A DNA stretch of 61,444 nt, filler included, from Choristocarpus tenellus KU-1152 (lineage: Eukaryota; Protista; Phaeophyceae), in NCBI GenBank assembly GCA_964200185.2. It is 11 parts of 11 records of this genome, joined end to end, with 100 filler letters (N's around TTAATTAATTAA, not from the genome) between each part and the next. Parts side by side here need not be neighbours in the genome. Positions count along the whole stretch, not along the records: positions 28,051 to 34,411 come from CAXNAD020008299.1; 10 more parts are not named here. One strand, 5' to 3'. Made by a program: the position numbers and the translations under genes. The notes under the pieces were generated by a model. It made no database searches, was not told the DNA's origin, and was given only the letters and a program-made list of their open reading frames with translations. Positions 73-34,511 of this stretch are shown one piece after another (the stretch's first letter is position 1; every line of letters starts with the position of its first letter).

Positions 73-547
73 AAACACATGTACGTACGAGCAAATGTAC
101 CCTCAAGGTAGGCTACTATTCTATTCAACACACGCATGCACGTATGCAGATGCAGAGCAGGAACAAGGATACTTCCTGCAGATGAAACTTGCCTTAAGCG
201 CTTCGTTTTTGCGAATAACAGAAAGAAAAACTGTAAACATCTTCTGTCAATGAAATTTAAGGTTTGTCGGAGTCGCTCAGTCCTCACGTTTCCCCATCCC
301 CTGCCCGCTGCAACTCTACTCACCAACAAACCCTTCCAAGATTTGTTGGATCGTTCCTTCTATCTCAACCCCCTTTCCTCTGCCTATATGAAGATTCAAG
401 ACTTCTCCTTTTCTCCTCACAAATAAAATAAATTATGTTTTTCATTTCCAACAACACCAAGAAAATCGCCCTGAGATTCGACCCCAGACAGATCCCCCTC
501 GCCTTCTTCCATGCTTCCTTCACCCTACCCCCGACCTCTGCTCAGTT

Positions 548-2287
548 CTATATTCTTACCTCAGCCTCTAAGTCCACTACCTCCATTTCTCGGTCAGTTC
601 CCGAGCCAGTAGTACCTTCTCCAGGAAACAATGCCTGCAACGAAATACTCAGGATTTGTATATTTGTATGCACGTGCTTGTCCCTCCCATCTTCCGTCGA
701 CTTACAACAGGATTCTTCCTCAATCAAAGCCTTCCCCCAGGGAGGAAGCACTGCAGGGCAGAACTCAAATATATCACTTGCGCCCCCACCCCCTTCCTCT
801 TCCTCCCCATCCCCTGCCTTCTTCCTGTCACCTGTGGCAATACTTGTCAACTGGAGAGCCTTGCATACTTTCCCTGTTGCCAACCACAGCCAGTTGTGTG
901 ATGGTACCCAATTCACACAAAGTGCACGAACTAATGTGCCTACAAAAGGGAAGGCCTCAAACGTGGTAGCCGGAACTGACTTCCAAGCAAGACCTCTTGG
1001 TGCTGCGGCAATCATCATCGCTGTAGACAAAAGCAAGGCCGTCAAGAACCACACGAGGCACCACGCCAAACCCTTGCTTTTCCCCACAGTAGCAGGGTGT
1101 GCACTGGCATTGACAGTGGAATCTTCAGCCAGGATTACACCAGGACTCGGAGTCACTCCTCGAGATTCACCCTGGAGCTGTTGATCTGCACCTGAAGTGG
1201 CGCTACCAGCTACTGTGGAGAAGGGGGCATCAGTAGGGAATAGGGGAGTGTCGACTACCCCCGAAGTAGAGGTTTCTGTGGTAACAGCAATGTTCTCAGG
1301 TAGAACTAGAGAAGAGTGCTGCCCAACCGTCAGGGATTGGCTCTGATCCCTTGACAGCAGCCGTTGCCAGGCCTGCTGGACATCCAGGCCCTCTGCCACA
1401 ACAACTGGGAGTTGGGGAATACTACCTGCTACGTTGGTGACTTTGGTCCGGATGAGACCGTTAATCATAGTGGTGACTACAGTCTGGACATCAGTCATGG
1501 ATTGACTTCTGACCTGGATATGTTGGTTGGTCTCAGGAGCAACAACGTTAATCACTGAAGCTGGGGAAGCGGTGGTTGCACCCTGGGGAAGAGAATCAGT
1601 ACCAGTTGATGAGCTAGTAGTGGATGTCTCATCCTTGACAAGTGTGCAAGCTGAGTCCCTGGGTGGGCCTCGGTTTAGGTCATGGGTCTGACCCCCAGGC
1701 ACATCATATCCATCTGTAGCTGTTGTCCTGGAGGTATCCGTTAGAAGTGAAGTGGTGGTGACTGAGGGTGAGGAAACTGTGGGAAAAGTGATAGCTGCTG
1801 GTATTGCAGGGCCAGTGCCAATGCCACCGTTCACCATTGCCATAGTGGATACCGGAGATTGCTGCAGAGGTGCTGGGAAGGAGAGGGTTGGAGGGGTCGG
1901 TGTCTCAGGACAAAGTTGTTGGGCAAGTCTGGAAGTCAACATCATGGGGGGCACCAACTCTGACTTAGCGTGCCTCTGAGCGATAGCCCCAGCTGTTGCA
2001 ACTGTTGGTTGGTCTCCCATGTGCACCACAAACCCTACCCCACTCTGGACTACGGAGGGATGATCATCATTGACCGGGCTAATGTATTTTCCTGGGTCAC
2101 CATTGTTGCTGTTCAGTGATAGGCGAGGGGTTGTCGAAAATCTCCCTCCCCCACTGCTGCTGCTGTTCAGACTTTGCTTTCTGGAAGACAAAAGATCATG
2201 GAGGGGGGAAATCCTAGAATCATTTGAAGATTTCGAAGACGTTCCATGAGTTACTTGTACCTCCTGGAAAGGGGAGAATGTTTGCAT
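548..2287 (-). CDS. Intronless 579-aa orphan ORF: Ser/Thr/Pro-rich region, then a hydrophobic segment and an acidic tail
   Basis: Uninterrupted 1.74-kb ORF. Hydrophobic stretch GLAWCLVWFLTALLLSTAMMIAAA. No recognisable domain. Confidence 0.45.
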   Translation of the reverse strand: MQTFSPFQEVQVTHGTSSKSSNDSRISPLHDLLSSRKQSLNSSSSGGGRFSTTPRLSLNSNNGDPGKYISPVNDDHPSVVQSGVGFVVHMGDQPTVATAGAIAQRHAKSELVPPMMLTSRLAQQLCPETPTPPTLSFPAPLQQSPVSTMAMVNGGIGTGPAIPAAITFPTVSSPSVTTTSLLTDTSRTTATDGYDVPGGQTHDLNRGPPRDSACTLVKDETSTTSSSTGTDSLPQGATTASPASVINVVAPETNQHIQVRSQSMTDVQTVVTTMINGLIRTKVTNVAGSIPQLPVVVAEGLDVQQAWQRLLSRDQSQSLTVGQHSSLVLPENIAVTTETSTSGVVDTPLFPTDAPFSTVAGSATSGADQQLQGESRGVTPSPGVILAEDSTVNASAHPATVGKSKGLAWCLVWFLTALLLSTAMMIAAAPRGLAWKSVPATTFEAFPFVGTLVRALCVNWVPSHNWLWLATGKVCKALQLTSIATGDRKKAGDGEEEEGGGGASDIFEFCPAVLPPWGKALIEEESCCKSTEDGRDKHVHTNIQILSISLQALFPGEGTTGSGTDREMEVVDLEAEVRI

Positions 2288-2336
2288 TTAGAGAGTAGGT
2301 TGTTGGGGTGTGCGGGGTGGGTGAAAAAAGGGGTAA

Positions 2337-2587
2337 GAGTGAAAGTGTCTTAGAGGGTACGAGTTCTGTCCTGTTTGTCCGTTTGGGCTTGGCTTCTTAT
2401 GGGTTTATTACATTTCCTACTCCAAAATGCGTCGGAATAGGAAATGTATACGTCATGAAAAGGTGTGTCCGAAACAAGGATAATGGCACTTTCTACCCAA
2501 CACGATAGCCAAAATTACATCAAAATCGCAACATTGGATTAAGGCCCCCGAACTGACGCCGCTCTACCGTCTAAGATACTTAAACTC
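2337..2587 (+). mobile_element. MITE family B (~250 bp), TSD TAA
   Basis: TIRs GAGTGAAAGTGTCTTAGAGGGTA / TACCGTCTAAGATACTTAAACTC. TAA on both sides (2334-36, 2588-90). Four other copies in the window. Confidence 0.9.
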
Positions 2588-3208
2588 TAAAGGGGTGCAG
2601 CGTGAGATGCAGTGTTCAGGTGATGCAAGATTACATTTAGCATATGTTCTCATCCCTCAATCATTATGTACAGGACGCCATACACATAAATAAAGATGAC
2701 GTTACAATCCTGCGAAATGGAATATATATCACAATCATTCTGTTAAAAATTCCAATATCCCCCTAAGAAGTCTGTACTCCGCAAATGTATACTGATGTGT
2801 TACAGTGAGGATGAAAAAATTGTCCACCTGTGTCTCTGCCTATAATATTAGCACTGAAGTTTATAGTTTTAACATCTGTTATTAAATTCTTGGAAGAATT
2901 TCAGCTGTGTGACCCACATGGGATCTCTTGGTCACCTGCGCTTGCTCTGAGTATGCTCTAGGTAAACGAAGTAACCACTCTTCTACTACGACTGAGGTCG
3001 AAAGTTGTGTGTCAATTAATCAATTTAGCATCCCTGAGGAGAAATCGAGTACCCTTTTCACCAAGAGAGAGGTCGACCTACTGTCATCATTGGTGGACTA
3101 CCCTTTGGCAAAATGTTTCTGTGGAGGACCACTGTACATAGTATGTTGACTTCGTGCAAGTTTTAGTACCACAACACATTCCCCTTACATTAGTGTAAAT
3201 AAATTATA

Positions 3209-4893
3209 CTATCTCCGTGCCATAATTCTGTGCTGCGTTGTCCATTAACTTTAGAAGATAATGAACTTAATTCTGAAAGAAGATTTGGAATCCTTGACGA
3301 ATTTCTGGTTAGGTCAGCTCGTTTATTATTATTTCTCTCCGTCCATCACAATTTTATCAGCCACAGAAAGCCTCCATGTCTACCTTCAGTGTGTTTTCAA
3401 TCTCACCAGACAACTGCCTCTTCCTTACCCCTGTGTGCTCCGCACTGAAGTTATTTCCCCCTTTGTATCTAAGAACTTGATCGTACACCATAAAAAGGAG
3501 CTGCCAAGCCCTCTCAAGTGGCTTCATCATACTCCTCATACTGGTTCTTAATGACCTTCACCATCTCCTCGACGAATCCAAACCACTCCCCCATCACCCG
3601 GCATTTCAAAGGCCTGAAGAAGCACAGGCACGTGATACTGAGATTGGGGGAGTTAGATGGCTACGCCACAAGCCTAATCGACCACCCCTCAGTCTTCTCT
3701 GCCTCTAACAAGATTTCTGAGTTGCCCTTGCCCGTGTGTGGGGGGGTGACACCGTCTTCCTGAACGACAATGTGCTTCCCCTGCAACCAAGGCATCTTGA
3801 TCTTGATTGCAGGCAGTAAATTCTCTGTGTACCACTTCCTGTACCACAAATGGTCTAAAGTACAGTCCTGCTCTCATACACATCCCCCTTTTAATGGTTC
3901 TTGCTTGTCCTGTCTGCCGTTTTTGGCGCGTACACACGCCAAACACCAAGCTTTCCATCAAAGCTGTGAGCCAAATCTGGGCGGGCATTGATCGCAATGA
4001 GCATGGTTTTAGGGATATGACTCTTGTGCTGCACAGTAGAGGAACCTGGAAGATCGCTATCATCCTCATGCGGAAATACCCTAACCCTTTCCCCATCAGC
4101 CATCATGTAAACCAGGTTCAGTCACACGGATCATACTTGCCATGGAGGCGTACACACCACATTTCTGGTTAACTTGGTCGCAAACAAAGTCCATTCTCCA
4201 TACCTCTTGCCACGATTTACGCTTGGGTTTGATTCAGCGGCAATTCGACATGGCCCCCATATCATCCAACCACCTGTTTATGGTGCTCGTGCTATAATTC
4301 AGCCCCTTGGGCGGCCATCTTCATTGTCACCTGACGCACTGTGGATGACCGATTATCGGAGTTGATACTATGTTTTGTGGCCATCTTGGTCGGTGTGAGC
4401 TCCGAAGGACCCCCACTACGTGCCGCCACCCCTAGGTCAAGCGTGTGGCCATGGGCGAGCTGATTGGCGACATCCTCCCAGACCCTCGCGTGTAACGCTT
4501 GGACACTCCAAACTCCGCTGCAAGGGTTGGCCCAACGTGTCGCGGCAGTTAATACTCACCAGGGACCATCGCAAGGGCATGCCACACTGCAAGCGCAACC
4601 CTGGTATTCAGGGACACTTGGGCACCCTACTTGGGGGGGTCGATGGGAGGGTTACCATGCCGATGTTTTGAACCTCAACATGCCCAGTTCTGGCCTTAAA
4701 ATAACCCAAAAGGGTTCCTACTTTGACAACTTGAAGCACCTCGAGTTTGTAGCTGATGATCATCGACCCCACCTTTTCTCAAAGCTGAGATTGTTAACCC
4801 GATTTCATTCTGTGGGGTTATCGTCCAATTCGGCGCGGTTCTCGCTCGGCGAGCCCAGATGTTTTACGGCACAAACTTATGGCACAGAGCAAG
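3209..4893 (-). mobile_element. Tc1/mariner element (plant-type DD39D/Osmar-like), frameshifted transposase pseudogene
   Basis: Fragments VQHKSHIPKTMLIAINARP, FDGKLGVWRV, RTSKNH, IVVQED and a decayed SPDLN-like motif. Imperfect TIRs CTATCTCCGTGCCATAA / TTATGGCACAGAGCAAG, with TA on the left. Aligns along its length to 48871-50519. Confidence 0.9.
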
Positions 4894-28050: not shown

Positions 28051-29015
28051 GTGATTTGGTTGCACGTGTCAGATTTGAAATGAGGGGGCAAAAAAAGAAG
28101 ACTGTTGGTTAGATTCCCTTTTGTCCTTGCGTACGCTCGAGGAATGGGAATGGGAATATATGCCACCATTTATTTGGGCTTGGTTAGGAGTTTCGACGTT
28201 TGCATGTGTCGGATTTCGAATGTGTTCAAACAGGCTTATTGGTTGGTGCATGTTGGTCGTATAGAGTTAAAGTATCTTAGAGGGTACGAGCCCTGTTTGT
28301 CCGTTTGGGGCTTGGCTTCCCACGTTTTTTTTTTTACTTTTTACCTACTCCAAAATATATTAGTAGGTATAATGTGTACGTTATCAAATGTTGTGTCCGG
28401 AACAAGGATTTTGATACTTCCTAACAAACACTACTACAGCCAAAATTACATCAAGATCGCAGCATTGGATTTTGACCCCCAGACGGACGCGGCTCTACCC
28501 TCTAAGATACTATGACTCATAGTTAGGATAAAGAATGAGAGGTATTTCACTGCTTGTTTCAGGTTTAGTTATTGGTTTGTTTGGTTGCATGAGTGGGATT
28601 TGGTTAGCACATAAAGAGGGCTGTCGGTTAGGTGTGTATTGTCCCAGTGTTAGCACGAGGAATTGAAAAAAAGACCATGGACCGTTTCGAGGTTAATTTT
28701 TCGTTTATTTGCTTGCATGTCGTGTCTGGTATGTACACAAAGAGGACTGTCAGTTAGGGCCTGTTGTCCCGGTGTGTGCACGAGGAACTAGAAAATATTC
28801 CATAGACTGTTTTAAGTTTAGTATTTCGTTTATTTGCTTGCATGTGTCGGATTTAGTATGCACGCAGACGGGGTTGTTGGTCAGGGTGATAGGGTCAAAG
28901 TTGTTTGCATGAAGGAAGGAAAAAGGGTCAGGTTTTACTTTCGGGTTAGTGTAGTGTTTCTTTGATATCATGTATCGACGGATTCTGGATGTGTTCACAA
29001 AGGGTTATTGGTCAA
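28051..29015. repeat. Degenerate ~120-140-bp tandem array with core TTGCATGTGTCGGATTT, interrupted by a MITE B
   Basis: Core recurs near 28060, 28200, 28585, 28712, 28838 and 28968. Confidence 0.6.
28264..28518 (+). mobile_element. MITE family B, TSD ATA
   Basis: ATA|GAGTTAAAGTATCTTAGAGGGTA...TACCCTCTAAGATACTATGACTC|ATA. Confidence 0.92.
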
Positions 29016-29579
29016 GGTCTATTGTCGTACGTTTCGCTGGAAGTACTTAAGATATACTTCCCTTGATTCGGGGTTAGGGTTAGTGGGTTGAATAAATCCT
29101 GATGAGCTAGGGTTGGTTTGGAGTATGTAGGGTCGATGACGGCACTGGTACGTAATTCAGGTAAGACGCTTGTCTATTTTAGGTTGCCAAGGGATGCAGA
29201 TGGGCTCAAGTGTAAGTGTTAGGGTAAGGTTATGGTTAGTGTCGGCGTGAGGGGGTGGCGATCCAGGCCGTTCGTCGAGTTTATGGCACGTGTTTGGGGT
29301 AGACTCAGGGTTTGTGTTTTGCTTAGGGGCATTGGGCGTGGACTTCGGGATATATTCCTCCAAGATTTGATTGAGGACGAGAACGGCCCTCGTTTGTCGA
29401 CACTTGGACAAAGCATGAGATGGTGCATACATTATTGAGAAGCAGGGGGGAGCTAGGTAGTAGGGTTCAGGGAGTAATTAGCGGCTCCTAAGAAGACAAC
29501 GTATCCATCGCAGGCCTTGGCGAATTGATTGGAAACTTAGTGGAAAAGATGGAGAAGAGTTGTTTAAAAAATGTTTTAG

Positions 29580-31965
29580 ATTTTAGTAGTCTAAACCTTG
29601 GAATTGGACACGCTCTGTTATACAAATTATGAACACAGGTCTAATCCTCAAGATGAGTATCATATATATGATACACTGACACCTCTGACTGGTAGAAATG
29701 TATCCGATACCACTGTGTAAATGCATAACCCATCGGATGGAAACTGCATGAACATGGTAGTCGAACACCAAGGCAAGGTACACTGATGCACGAATCAGAC
29801 ACAAGTAACTCGACCCGTGCTTCAACAAAAAACTGAAACGACTGAAGCCCTATTTCAATTGGGGGGCAGAGTCGAAATCACATTCCTCACCCTTCTCCGA
29901 CCACTCTACAGGCTTCGGGTATGCCTTGGTTAGAAGGTGCCAGAGATATTTAGGTGCGTGGAGTACCTGTCATTCCACAGTTTGGCCTTCATGAGGCTCA
30001 TGAAGATGGCCTTCCTTTCATGGAGTGCTACCACATGCTGGGGACACAATGTGCTGCTGGGTCTCTCTCCACGACCGCTGAGTTTTAGCTGTGTGGGTTC
30101 ATGGACGTAGCAGTCATCTCCGAATACAATATTTTTGGCCGCTCTGCCGGCCTTGATGAGCCTGAACCCATCGTTGTCTTATATGACCTGGGTAAAGATC
30201 TGGGTTTGAACTCAGTACTGCGACGAAGCAGGTTTTGTTGCCAATGGTAGGAGCTCAGTAACGCATGCCTCCATGAAGGCTTCGGTGGTCTCCATGACGA
30301 ATGCATCGCCAGAGTCGACCGCGTCCTGTGTCACGATGTCATCACAATGTGCGGACGTTTCGTCGTCATCCTCATGCTTCGTAGTAGATGGCGTTGCATT
30401 TTCCGTGTCTCCGCCCTTTCTGGCAGAAGCGAAGACGTCCGAAAAAAAAATAGGTTCTAAATCGCGTCCATCATTTCCACGAGGCTGTTTGAATGGTCTG
30501 ATCCGTCCAGCACCTTTTCCCAACCTCTTCTTCCTAATGACCATCGTTTTGGCCTTCCCTTTACCTTTTGCGGAAGGCTTGTCCCTATGTGAGGAACCTG
30601 ATGATGTCAAAGCAACCCTTCGCTCCACAGTATCGTCATTCCTGTTCCCTATAACCGTTGGGTAATGATCGACGGACTTGTCGCTGCTGCTGCCCACCGC
30701 ATGGACGTTTGGGGACATTCCGGGGTCACTCCTGACAGGCATGGGCTCTGAGTCCGTGCCTAGCCGCCCCCCCACGTCCTCCTGGACATCTTCTTCTGGA
30801 CAAGACAAAGTACTACAATCAGGCCGGTCCCCATCGCCTTCAGAGTTGTGTTCCGAGGGTGTGGTTGGATGCCTTCCCCCATGGGGTGTCCCACTTCCCG
30901 TACCTACTGTAGGGTTAGCCGATGGCGTCTCCTGTTCCTCTTCATCACCTAGTGGGTCAGGTCCTCCACAAGGTATAGGCGTGGATATGCCACCAGCTAT
31001 CGGTGTCTTCACCAGCGCAAAATTGCGGAAGATGGACAGTTCGTCTATGAGGAGTTAAATACGATCCGGATTGTGGTTGTCCTTGAGAGCGTTGCATGTG
31101 ATTACAGTGCCTCCTGGTCGGGTCTGGAGAAGGGCGACTGCTCTCTCGTGGGAGGCACTCGTTTTCGGACTTGAACTTGTCAAGGTCGTGCTCGGAAGTG
31201 ACGTTTTTCTCTGGCGTGATCACAATGTTTGTGACTCGTGTTATCTCTGTAATGGTGGATGAGTAGTCAAAGGATGAGGCAAAGGTTGGTGAAAAGGAGT
31301 AAGCAAAGGAGGATACAGAGTAGGAGGCAAAGGCTGAGGAAAAGATGAAAGGAAAGGAGTACGTGCGGTTCGTCATACTTGGGTGGATTCTTTGAGCCCA
31401 TAAATCAGGAAGACAAGTAGGGCTTGTAACATAGGGTTAGGAGGATGCGTATAGGACTATAGGACATGACCCGCAACATAATTTCCCAGTCTGCCCAGGG
31501 TTGTGTCGATCGACATAGCACAGCGAACGTATGAATAAATCTGTTAGACGAGCATCTTCGGAATATGTAAAACTCGAGAACCCTGCGTAAGTGTACTGTG
31601 TGAAACTGTCCAACGTCGGTAAGATCTGTGAGAGTCGAGGCGGTGTGTTTGGTGTAGGGAACGATGTGTGATGTTCACGTATGGCGGTGTTGTACAATGA
31701 TGTAATTGCTTGCTTGCGTGTTCGCCACTGGTTTTTAAGGTAACGCCTTCTGAGTATTTGACGATGTCCAGATAGACTGTACTCTCCTCCACATCCTTCT
31801 GCAACACGAGGTCCCTTTTCACCTGTGGAATTAATAGGGTAAGATTAATGCGCGCGATCAGGGCGTTTATTGTGAGGTGACTTGTTACGAACTCAAATAC
31901 GGTGGACAGATGAGAGGATGAACCTGACATTCCCTTGAGTACCTCTTCGCTCAGGATGTTAATAT
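29580..31965 (-). pseudogene. Family X copy, 3' half
   Basis: Colinear with 24185-26899. cag|VKRDLVLQKDVEESTVYLDIVKYSEGVTL; cag|ILPTLDSF...; VFGDDCYVHEPTQ...CPQH...AYPKPVEW...QLK*. Frameshifts present. Confidence 0.8.
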
Positions 31966-32162
31966 CAAATCAAGACACCTTGACAAAATACTCTACGCTC
32001 TGCTAAAACGTGGATAGACTTAGCATGTAGGAAATATTAATATAGGTAGTATATTAATATTTGCCAATTTCTAGTAACTTTAAGTTCTTCATTTTTTATC
32101 ATAAGCCTCTCCATATTTGCTTATAGAGAAAACCTATATCACATTATTTTTTCTGTTTTAGA

Positions 32163-32435
32163 ACAATCGAGGTTAGGGATTTATTTTTTGCAACTCCAGC
32201 AAGACTTAAATTCCTAAGAACAGACAGAACAGAGCTAACAGCTATAACAAATTGTGTTAAAAAAATTGCTTTAGCACTCCCAAAAATATGTTTTACACTA
32301 ACTCATGACGATAGAGAATTACTAAAAGTAAGAAAGCAATCAGGATCAGATAGTATCAAAAATAGAATTTCTGAAATTATAGGAACAGAATTTATTGAAA
32401 ATGCTACAGAAATATCTTTTGAAAGAGATAATGTT
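32163..32435 (+). pseudogene. mutL: Bacterial DNA mismatch-repair MutL fragment (Rickettsiales-like), inside a host contig
   Basis: Open frame, not in the supplied ORF track: TIEVRDLFFATPARLKFLRTDRTELTAITNCVKKIALALPKICFTLTHDDRELLKVRKQSGSDSIKNRISEIIGTEFIENATEISFERDNV. DLFFATPARLKFL is the alphaproteobacterial form of the MutL LFxNxPxR motif. Strongly AT-rich codons and no introns. Confidence 0.85.
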
Positions 32436-32437
32436 GC

Positions 32438-32650
32438 ACACGACAAAATGGTGTAAGAGTAGTCAAGATAAGGTATATCATGTACACGACAAAATGGTGC
32501 AGAAGTAGTCAAGATAAGATATATCATGTACAAGACAAAATGGTGTAGGAGTGGTAAAGGTAAGGTATACCATGTAGATGACAAAATGGTGTAGGAGTAG
32601 ATCAGATCAGATCAGATCAGTCAGTCAGTCAGTCAGTCAGTCAAGATCAA
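32438..32650. repeat. 46-bp tandem repeat (~3.5 copies) followed by (GATCA)n/(GTCA)n
   Basis: ACACGACAAAATGGTGTAAGAGTAGTCAAGATAAGGTATATCATGT repeats from 32438 and 32484 onward. Confidence 0.9.
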
Positions 32651-32974
32651 GCGGTGACAAATAAGAGTAGAAGGTTTTTAAAAGCAGGAAGGGATCGGCA
32701 AGACATAAAGCAGGCGGAAGGAAGAAACAGAAACAAAAAACATAACAACGCAACATATTTGGAGTTAGGGTTGGGGAACAAATAACACAAAGGGCAACAT
32801 TTCGACAATCAAACAGCATGTATGCCACAGTGAGCCAATGGGATGCTTGCATCCCTTTCATTCACTCTGCAAGTCTCAACTATATTGTAAACATTGCAGC
32901 TGTTGCAGGGTCATCAGGGGGTATATGCATATACATGTATAGATTGGGTAAATCTTCACAAAGCTTGACTTACC

Positions 32975-33199
32975 CATTCCTCTGGAAATATCTCCATCCC
33001 GACAACGTACCACAATGAGAGCGCGTCAGTAGGTAGTTTTTTGGCTGCCTGCTCTGAGAAGACAGGCGCAGCCAATTCCACAATGTCGCGCCAGTGATAG
33101 CCTTGGTGGGTCTGCCCTCTGAGGATGGATAGACTGACCCCAGTGAGGACATCAGTGCACATTCTTGCGAATTGCTGCTCCTTGATCTCGTCTGTGAGC
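32975..33199 (-). pseudogene. Family X upstream exon
   Basis: tttag|LTDEIKEQQFARMCTDVLTGVSL...WRDIVELAAPVFSEQAAKKLPTDALSLWYVVGMEIFPEEW|gtaagt has the same splice positions and sequence pattern as 11417-11648. Confidence 0.75.
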
Positions 33200-33534
33200 T
33201 AAATATATAGGTGGGCGATCGTGTTTCGTTAGGAACCCGTGAAAGAACGTGCTTTGAGGATGTGAAGGATTTAGGGTTAACAGCGTGTCGATCTGCAATG
33301 ACAGCAAGGGTGCTGTTGTATAAACAGTGATAGAGTACGTGATCAATGATGACGGGATCTGTAGGGAGTGCGAGGTTCTTGTCCATGCGTGGGCTAGGCA
33401 AACGTGAGATGAGAAGGGCGAAGTGCTGTTGTCTTCATGAGGACGGCATAGCGTTTCCGTGGAGACTGCTATTCGCATTAAACCCCACCAACATGGAAGG
33501 AATATTGAATATGAGAACACACCAATACCGTACG

Positions 33535-33870
33535 CAGATGAAAAGGATTTACGCGCTGACCCAGGTTAGATGTTGAGAGGGCAACCATGCACAGGTTTGT
33601 GATTGGCATAGGGCAGACAGTAATGAAGAAATTTGATGTTTTATATCGGACGGTAAATGCCATCAATTTCCAAAGCACGGCAAAACGGTTGGGGGTGGTG
33701 TGTACCGATTTGGAACAAGAACCCTAAGCAGGAAACATTAAGTTGACCCACGAAAGTGATAGATGAAGATGAAAAGGATTTATGCGCCAACCCAGGTTAG
33801 ATGTCGAGAGGGCAACCATACACAGGTTTGTGTTTGACATAGGGCAGACAGTAATGAAGAAATTTGATGT
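33535..33870. repeat. ~105-bp direct duplication (33535-33640 / 33766-33870) abutting the prmC fragment
   Basis: AGATGAAAAGGATTTA...GGGCAGACAGTAATGAAGAAATTTGATGT occurs twice. Confidence 0.9.
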
Positions 33871-34041
33871 GTTATCAACATAAAATTCCAAGCCATAGAA
33901 TTCTCGTTTACCAATAATATATGCAATTGGTTCTATCAATTTTCGCCTGGATATTAATCCAAAATATTCTTGCTTAAACTCAGGATTTAATTTCATATTA
34001 TAATTCAATATTACCTTTTCTTGAGAAAATGATAAGTAGAA
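33871..34041 (-). pseudogene. prmC: Bacterial release-factor glutamine methyltransferase PrmC/HemK, N-terminal fragment (Rickettsiales-like)
   Basis: LSFSQEKVILNYNMKLNPEFKQEYFGLISRRKLIEPIAYIIGKREFYGLEFYVDN fits the PrmC RRxxxEPxAYIxGxxEFY motif. It breaks off just before the expected VLIPRP. AT-rich. Confidence 0.85.
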
Positions 34042-34511
34042 TTTTTTATTTGCTTATTTTATTATTATGCCCTCTGACATTTTGCAGATGTGTCAGTGGG
34101 GAAACCAATGAAAACTATATACAGTACCTACCCCGATTTTATGCCAAATATTACGTACCAAAAAAAAGACTTTTGAACTGGATTTCCCGTATTTGGGCGA
34201 TTTGGCACAAAATCGGGGAGATATTCACGCGAGTTTGGCGCGCGCGTAAAATTTTCTTGCGAAAAGTGCCTTTCTTCCTGAGTCATGACCACACAGAAGT
34301 ACAGTACGTTGCTGGTAGGGGAATATAGTGGAAGCCATACCTTGTGCCGCGAGAAACCTCTGCAAGATGCCTTCAAATACACCAGGTCTGCCTTTCTACA
34401 CAATCCACAAGNNNNNNNNNNNNNNNNNNNNNNNNNNNNNNNNNNNNNNNNNNNNTTAATTAATTAANNNNNNNNNNNNNNNNNNNNNNNNNNNNNNNNN
34501 NNNNNNNNNNN

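Follow-up and report, generated by a model that had tools for sequence, protein, structure and literature searches.

A 276-nt piece of a bacterial mutL gene, which appears to come from an unsampled member of the Rickettsiaceae, is embedded in repeat-rich host DNA in the assembly of Choristocarpus tenellus KU-1152 (Phaeophyceae; GCA_964200185.2). We put at roughly 0.55 the probability that it is a genuine NUWT-like nuclear insertion, captured by end joining, that is recent and not fixed. A second bacterial scrap, derived from PrmC (HemK), lies 1.4 kb downstream, and one of its junctions with host DNA is found in a contig from an independent run.

The window analysed here is a stretch of 61,444 nucleotides, made up of 11 parts of 11 records of this genome, and the 6.4-kb record that carries both pieces (CAXNAD020008299.1) occupies positions 28,051 to 34,411 of it; all coordinates below are window coordinates. 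For comparison we used two independent runs of the organism in the form of Logan contigs, referred to as X1 and X2, with single-copy depths of about 19 and about 12, respectively. Such contigs show presence and cannot prove absence. The features of the record are as follows.

32030–32161, no strand assigned: AT-rich block, 24% GC, single-copy, contiguous with unique host DNA at its left in an X2 contig.
32162–32437, plus strand: mutL fragment, Rickettsiaceae; 91-codon open frame at 32163–32435, no start codon, no ATP-binding motifs, no C-terminal domain.
32438–32600, no strand assigned: host tandem array, 46-nt unit ×3.5, adjoining the right end of the mutL piece.
32602–32643, no strand assigned: microsatellite (TCAG)n, with (GATCA)n before it.
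32644–32878, no strand assigned: single-copy host sequence, on the same contig as the tandem array in both runs (depth 19.4 in X1 and 11.7 in X2), with no base differences.
33536–33875, no strand assigned: host repeat, period 231 nt; its second unit stops short at 33875, where the PrmC piece interrupts it.
33871–34056, minus strand: fragment of the PrmC (HemK) N-terminal domain, residues ~30–92 of a ~285-aa protein, 25% GC, interrupted by a single in-frame stop close to its 5′ end; no methyltransferase domain.
34057–34411, no strand assigned: host element of very high copy number, adjoining the PrmC piece and running to the edge of the record's part, where it is cut.

The mutL piece had been picked out in a first-pass annotation as an abrupt AT-rich block containing a 91-codon frame that is absent from the ORF track, and this description holds in each respect. 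In the composition profile the block has 28–32% GC, against 42–55% in the flanks, and the frame at 32163–32435 on the plus strand is free of stops and translates to exactly the peptide quoted in that annotation. The frame, which stays open for a further 12 codons upstream of the 91, did not enter the ORF list, since no ATG, GTG or TTG occurs in it before its last codons. When its 273 bases were shuffled with the same base content, the frame stayed open in just 2 of 20,000 cases. DNA alignment with four bacterial mutL genes places the homology at 32162–32437, with sharp edges at both ends; the right junction shares at most 1 nt with the unit of the tandem repeat.

At the protein level, the piece matches the NCBIfam models NF000952 (E=5.1e-31, positions 144–231 of 623) and TIGR00585 (E=1.2e-25), and E. 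coli MutL structure sequences from the PDB align to it without gaps over residues 146–233 (E about 1e-12). A Pfam scan of the 91 residues gave no match, because the piece sits between two N-terminal Pfam models. In the nearest full-length MutL, a 605-aa protein at the locus we call L001, HATPase_c_3 spans residues 24–122, DNA_mis_repair 211–327 and MutL_C 420–562; our piece corresponds to residues 142–232, about 15% of the gene, and thus covers the last portion of the GHKL ATPase part and runs ~22 residues into the DNA_mis_repair (transducer) domain. The original label, "MutL ATPase/linker region", is therefore right as to the ATPase part, the end of which is present, but not as to the inter-domain linker, which lies at about residues 330–420.

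The GHKL ATP-binding motifs, located in the HATPase_c_3 part, are absent from the piece, which begins only at residue 142, and mutL alignments do not extend upstream of 32162. The transducer core is absent as well, and so is MutL_C, the C-terminal dimerisation/endonuclease domain: homology stops at residue 232 (32437), and the host tandem repeat comes next. Lacking both the ATP-binding motifs and the C-terminal domain, the piece is, judging by its sequence, a dead fragment with no plausible function of its own, and it cannot act as MutL. Co-option as a host exon or a small functional gene would fit the frame being open over 91 codons plus the 12 upstream, but we regard it as very improbable: there is no in-frame start codon, every catalytic or dimerisation element of MutL is gone, a conserved A-H-P motif carries a non-conservative H-to-L change, no run on record as RNA holds the piece, and it was not seen in X1 or X2.

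Nor does the piece derive from a eukaryotic MutL homologue (MLH/PMS) of the host itself, an origin that the first-pass annotation had named among the findings that would overturn its reading. Membership of the same superfamily speaks for such an origin, and nothing beyond that does. Against it, all 10 distinct PDB sequences that match at E≤1 are bacterial MutL, the best NCBIfam models (E=5e-31) are those of bacterial MutL, the closest relative is a Rickettsiaceae genome (82% amino acid identity) in whose clade the piece nests, and, at 30%, its GC content is the same as in its bacterial homologue and unlike that of the flanks. We consider a eukaryotic identity refuted by the bacterial-only PDB and NCBIfam matches together with the Rickettsiaceae placement, and its residual probability negligible.

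To place the donor we scanned one genome per bacterial species, which yielded 499 confirmed relatives of the mutL piece; the best 80 of these matches were all bacterial. The closest was a metagenome-assembled genome (MAG) labeled "Rickettsiaceae bacterium" (OZ247586.1, the genome of L001) at 82% amino acid identity, followed by "Ca. Megaera venefica" at 64%, other Rickettsiaceae MAGs at 57–66% and "Ca. Megaera polyxenophila" at 58%. In a tree of 81 rows and 92 alignment columns, built by maximum likelihood, the window piece is sister to L001 (SH-aLRT 80) and falls inside a clade of 12–13 rows made up of Rickettsiaceae and "Ca. Megaera" (SH-aLRT 85–89), the moderate support reflecting the use of just 92 columns. 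The Rickettsiales-like origin proposed earlier, for which a phylogeny had been suggested as a check, is thereby supported, with the piece nesting in the Rickettsiaceae beside the "Ca. Megaera" genomes. One argument originally offered for it did not survive: the motif taken as the alphaproteobacterial form also occurs in some gammaproteobacterial matches, and the placement consequently rests on the tree rather than on the motif.

None of the sampled genomes is the donor, as shown by DNA identities of just 79–83% between the window piece and the four nearest bacterial contigs: 79% for L001, 81% for L081, 80% for L085 and 83% for L082 (the last over 117 nt). Among the bacterial contigs themselves, DNA identity is 86% between L081 and L085 and 72% between L001 and either of these two. 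These values indicate that the donor belongs to a third, unsampled lineage of the Rickettsiaceae/Megaera clade, related to the named "Ca. Megaera" genomes and lying outside them. A metagenome scan gave nothing above 76% amino acid identity to the mutL piece, and a word search gave a 100% match over 29 residues only, on L081, which is a real bacterial contig. The donor genome was thus not found by the genome scan, the metagenome scan or the word search.

The short ORFs returned by the word search turned out to be parts of frameshifted mutL genes on real bacterial contigs, L081 and L082, in which an MFS transporter gene is followed by mutL, the same gene order as in L001. On these contigs, both from the same Rickettsiaceae clade, mutL is split by frameshifts into two or three ORFs (5730–7567 on L081, from ENA ERZ25072490; 1919–2421 on L082, from ENA ERZ23499184). 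The split reflects either decay of the gene in these symbionts or errors in contigs of very low coverage (1.47× for L081).

The window piece differs from L001 at 57 nucleotides, of which 34 are third codon positions; this corresponds to dN=0.12 and dS=1.05 (the latter near saturation) and to a dN/dS of about 0.12. Most of this divergence arose under purifying selection, that is, in living bacteria, and the copy itself is little decayed, given that the divergence is mostly synonymous. At 7 of 273 sites the window copy is unique where L001, L081 and L085 agree; 3 of these changes are synonymous and 4 non-synonymous, a small number, and one of the latter is the H-to-L change in the A-H-P motif mentioned above. 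These seven sites limit the decay since transfer to a few per cent.

The surroundings of the piece are clearly those of the host. In agreement with the earlier description of the block as embedded in host repeat DNA, the flanks at 28500–32030 and 32856–33845 are host repeats found at 25–240 times the single-copy depth in both independent runs, and most of the 6.4-kb record is high-copy repeat (summed depth in X1 of 500–4600). The tandem repeat that had been noted at the right is also real, and consists of the 46-nt array and the (TCAG)n microsatellite listed above; from 32438 to 32878 the sequence is single-copy and identical to the window in X1 record 8 and X2 record 13. Further tandem repeats lie within the high-copy flank at 28609–28845 (125-nt unit ×1.9) and 31268–31348 (12-nt unit ×6.8). 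The two units of the 231-nt repeat at 33536–33875 are 93% alike, and contain a conserved ORF-like stretch on the minus strand without a family match. An Rfam search found nothing, and the 14 other ORFs of the record that we tested gave no meaningful family match.

The element at the far right of the record is exceptional in its abundance: the summed depth at 34044–34241 is ~250,000, against ~19 for single-copy sequence in X1, which implies on the order of 10^4 copies. It has a sharp 5′ boundary at 34054–34060, AT-rich flanks at its other copies and internal length variants of 34–40 nt, and the stretch at 34057–34411 matched no Rfam family and no protein family.

Immediately upstream of the mutL piece is another AT-rich block, which the first-pass annotation (taking it as 32030–32162) had suggested might be a second, unrelated bacterial fragment. 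X2 record 12, a contig of single-copy depth, covers 31930–32161 with 2 differences, showing that the block at 32030–32161 is continuous with unique host DNA. All but one of its six frames contain stops, the exception being a 40-aa hydrophobic frame. The block matched no Pfam or NCBIfam family, nothing in the mutL neighbourhoods of 83 loci and nothing among 72,556 plasmids, and it did not align to the sequence upstream of bacterial mutL; given these blank comparisons, we do not class it as bacterial. A second bacterial piece does exist in the record, but it is the PrmC fragment 1.4 kb downstream.

That fragment coincides with another AT-rich block, visible in the composition profile at about 33850–34050, which the first-pass annotation did not report. 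Translation of the minus strand at 33862–34053 gives 64 residues that match the N-terminal domain of PrmC (Pfam PF17827, E=3.2e-7; NCBIfam TIGR03534, E=5e-8), with 335 matches at E≤0.001 among 1.84 billion representative proteins (best E=4.4e-12). The aligned part of the matched ~285-aa PrmC proteins is residues ~32–92, and identities to known PrmC proteins are ~50%. The SAM-dependent methyltransferase domain with its NPPY motif is absent: PrmC homology stops at residues V-D-N (33871), the point at which the host repeat of 231-nt period begins, itself truncated here; the junction has 4 nt (TTAT) common to both. The other end of the piece adjoins the very high-copy host element that starts at ~34057. 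Its best named relative is an AT-rich MAG, GCA_020628955.1 (contig GC 32%), and a word search with the PrmC piece gave no match.

For the PrmC piece, independent support is at hand. X2 record 16 covers 33846–34033, including the left junction between PrmC and the host repeat, in one contig. It shows 9 differences in 188 nt (95% identity) and diverges from the window beyond 34033, and is therefore a variant copy. The existence of a variant with the same host junction shows that the PrmC insertion is genuine and has had time to diverge into two forms.

The mutL piece fares differently in the two runs. Contig cover is lacking in both X1 and X2 over at least 32262–32437: the depth of the bin 32262–32459, 2.16 in X1 and 1.3 in X2, is exactly the input of the contigs that start at 32438 (22 of the bin's 198 bases at 19.4 and 11.7). 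No X1 or X2 contig was shown to bridge 32161/32162 or 32437/32438; instead, contig matches break exactly at these two points and continue with other sequence. In X2 record 12 the match ends at 32161, and the 53 letters that follow are unlike the window. The match of X1 record 8 starts at 32438 and is preceded by 2282 letters, of which just 56 match the window (at 32520–32575) and none match mutL or the block at 32030–32161. Exact look-ups of two junction-spanning ORFs found nothing.

The breaks at exactly both junctions mean that in the X1 and X2 genomes each host side is attached to some other sequence, and the continuations of X2 record 12 and X1 record 8 do not show these sides to be neighbours in those genomes. 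The missing cover and the two breaks together make the mutL piece either a recent, non-fixed insertion or part of a chimeric contig. The first-pass proposal of a nuclear insertion of endosymbiont DNA thus stands as far as the assembly goes, which has host DNA on both sides, but the independent contigs leave at least 32262–32437 uncovered and were not shown to bridge either junction. As the piece was not seen in X1 or X2, whose contigs break at both junctions, a nuclear insertion is likely but unproven. The length of the 46-nt array also differs between genomes: the X1 and X2 contigs have at least 56 further matching letters, with the joint going back 138 nt, and upstream of these extra letters lie up to 2.2 kb without a match to the window.

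A chimera, in contig or molecule, would mean that two host parts that are not neighbours, one ending at 32161 and the other starting at 32438, were linked, either in vitro or by the assembler, through DNA from a Rickettsiaceae symbiont sequenced along with the host. We think this unlikely, although it is the main rival reading. It would explain just as well why contigs of both runs break exactly at these points and continue otherwise, as well as the lack of cover over 32262–32437; the record is short and repeat-rich; and an undecayed fragment, with an open frame and a dN/dS of 0.12, is what one would expect of DNA straight from a living bacterium. On the other hand, two joins are needed around a fragment of 276 nt, the junctions share at most 1 nt, which makes a k-mer-driven misassembly unlikely, and the presence of a confirmed PrmC insert in the right-hand host part would be a coincidence under random chimerism. 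The silence of the two runs also weighs less than it might, Logan contigs being evidence of presence and not of absence.

An old insertion that is fixed in all individuals, and that failed to be assembled or reported in the short-read contigs of X1 and X2, seems to us improbable. Contig sets can miss stretches that are AT-rich, of low complexity or filtered, and the depth of 22.2 in the X1 bin 32064–32261 could mean that a contig runs ~60 nt into mutL; a depth-28 contig from ~32067 would fit this value, as would other combinations of contigs equally. However, the adjoining single-copy sequence was assembled cleanly at 19× and 12×, both junctions coincide with points where contigs continue differently, and an intact frame in DNA of 30% GC with only 7 unique sites argues against long neutral decay.

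The reading that we prefer is the recent insertion. In its favor we count that the piece is undecayed, that host DNA flanks it on either side, that its junctions are near-blunt and, most of all, that a confirmed PrmC insert lies nearby. We would argue, in addition, that neither one ligation nor one template switch would readily produce so short a stretch of bacterial sequence enclosed by host DNA and, by analogy, that symbiont inserts of similar short size are common elsewhere, as among the NUWTs of Onchocerca. Counted against it are the absence of the mutL piece from both runs and of any independent read that bridges either junction, and the length of the record, which at only 6.4 kb may be a small, weakly supported contig.

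If the mutL piece is an insertion, the course of events may have been as follows. Stray DNA from a lysed intracellular bacterium would have been captured as filler during end-joining repair of a chromosome break, so that a 276-nt piece of mutL from an unsampled Rickettsiaceae bacterium became joined into host chromosomal DNA. The landing site would be a repeat-rich, break-prone region, between a single-copy AT-rich stretch and the 46-nt tandem array; in the window allele, the 276 nt of mutL would stand in place of most of a longer array, which X1 and X2 have retained. The insertion would be young or non-fixed, as suggested by the intact frame, by divergence typical of genes evolving under selection in bacteria and by its not being seen in the two other runs. 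The PrmC scrap would be an older insertion of the same kind.

More tentatively, the two pieces could be traces of ongoing germline capture from a living, unsampled, Megaera-related symbiont: two events within 2 kb, the PrmC one older and since duplicated (the 95% variant), the mutL one private to the assembled individual and accompanied by the loss of most of the tandem array. We hold this extended version to be doubtful. If true, it would identify a break-prone hotspot that reuses symbiont DNA as repair filler, and would offer a dated series of markers for how long the host lineage has carried the bacterium.

Even short of that, the two scraps, if real, would imply that the host has carried a Rickettsiaceae symbiont of a poorly sampled clade, whose nearest genome has 79–83% DNA identity, and that DNA of this symbiont reaches host chromosomes. 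They would serve as a marker of past or present infection, with a presence/absence polymorphism available for population use, and would be a small case, found in nature, of a chromosome break filled with foreign DNA during repair. There are also consequences for assembly curation: filters that discard contigs as "bacterial" would here cost genuine host sequence, and the contig, if chimeric, should itself be removed.

Several known systems are close to what we describe. E. coli MutL (LN40, PDB 1b63; TIGR00585) is the structural reference to which the mutL piece aligns gap-free over residues 146–233, the difference being that the piece holds only 15% of the gene, without ATPase motifs, transducer core or C-terminal domain. 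As to the type of event, nuclear Wolbachia transfers were reportedly described in arthropods and filarial nematodes by Dunning Hotopp in 2007. NUWTs resemble our pieces in being short, non-functional gene pieces of Rickettsiales symbionts in host chromosomes, often several within a few kb, in their size range, and in their usefulness as markers of past or present infection. Filarial nematodes have hundreds of NUWT regions per genome, those of Onchocerca averaging 434 bp (PMC12693587). Here, in contrast, the donor is one of the Rickettsiaceae, of a Megaera-related clade, and not Wolbachia (Anaplasmataceae), and the mutL piece may not be fixed. The PrmC piece has the defining features of the NUWT class; the mutL piece has them in part, its junctions being without independent support.

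Among algal hosts, the nuclear genome of Volvox carteri contains a ~9-kb rickettsial block with four genes in synteny, PCR-checked in 13 strains (2015, PMC4324946). The two cases are alike in having a member of the Rickettsiaceae (the Megaira/Megaera group, with aquatic hosts) as donor to a eukaryote nuclear genome. They differ in that the Volvox insert is one block, whereas ours are two unlinked scraps, 276 and ~185 nt long, that lie in opposite orientation with host repeats between them.

The inferred mechanism has its nearest parallel in organelle DNA. NUMT and NUPT filler DNA is said to be captured at double-strand breaks by non-homologous end joining (work attributed to Ricchetti in 1999 and to Hazkani-Covo and Covo in 2008). 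The likeness lies in short foreign fragments with junctions that are blunt or have 1–4 nt of microhomology, and in the lack of a target-site duplication or transposon features; in our case the source is bacterial rather than an organelle, and break repair is the presumed route. Symbiont-to-host DNA transfer of this kind is thus known, and the new elements in C. tenellus are the unsampled Megaera-related donor and a hint of a presence/absence polymorphism.
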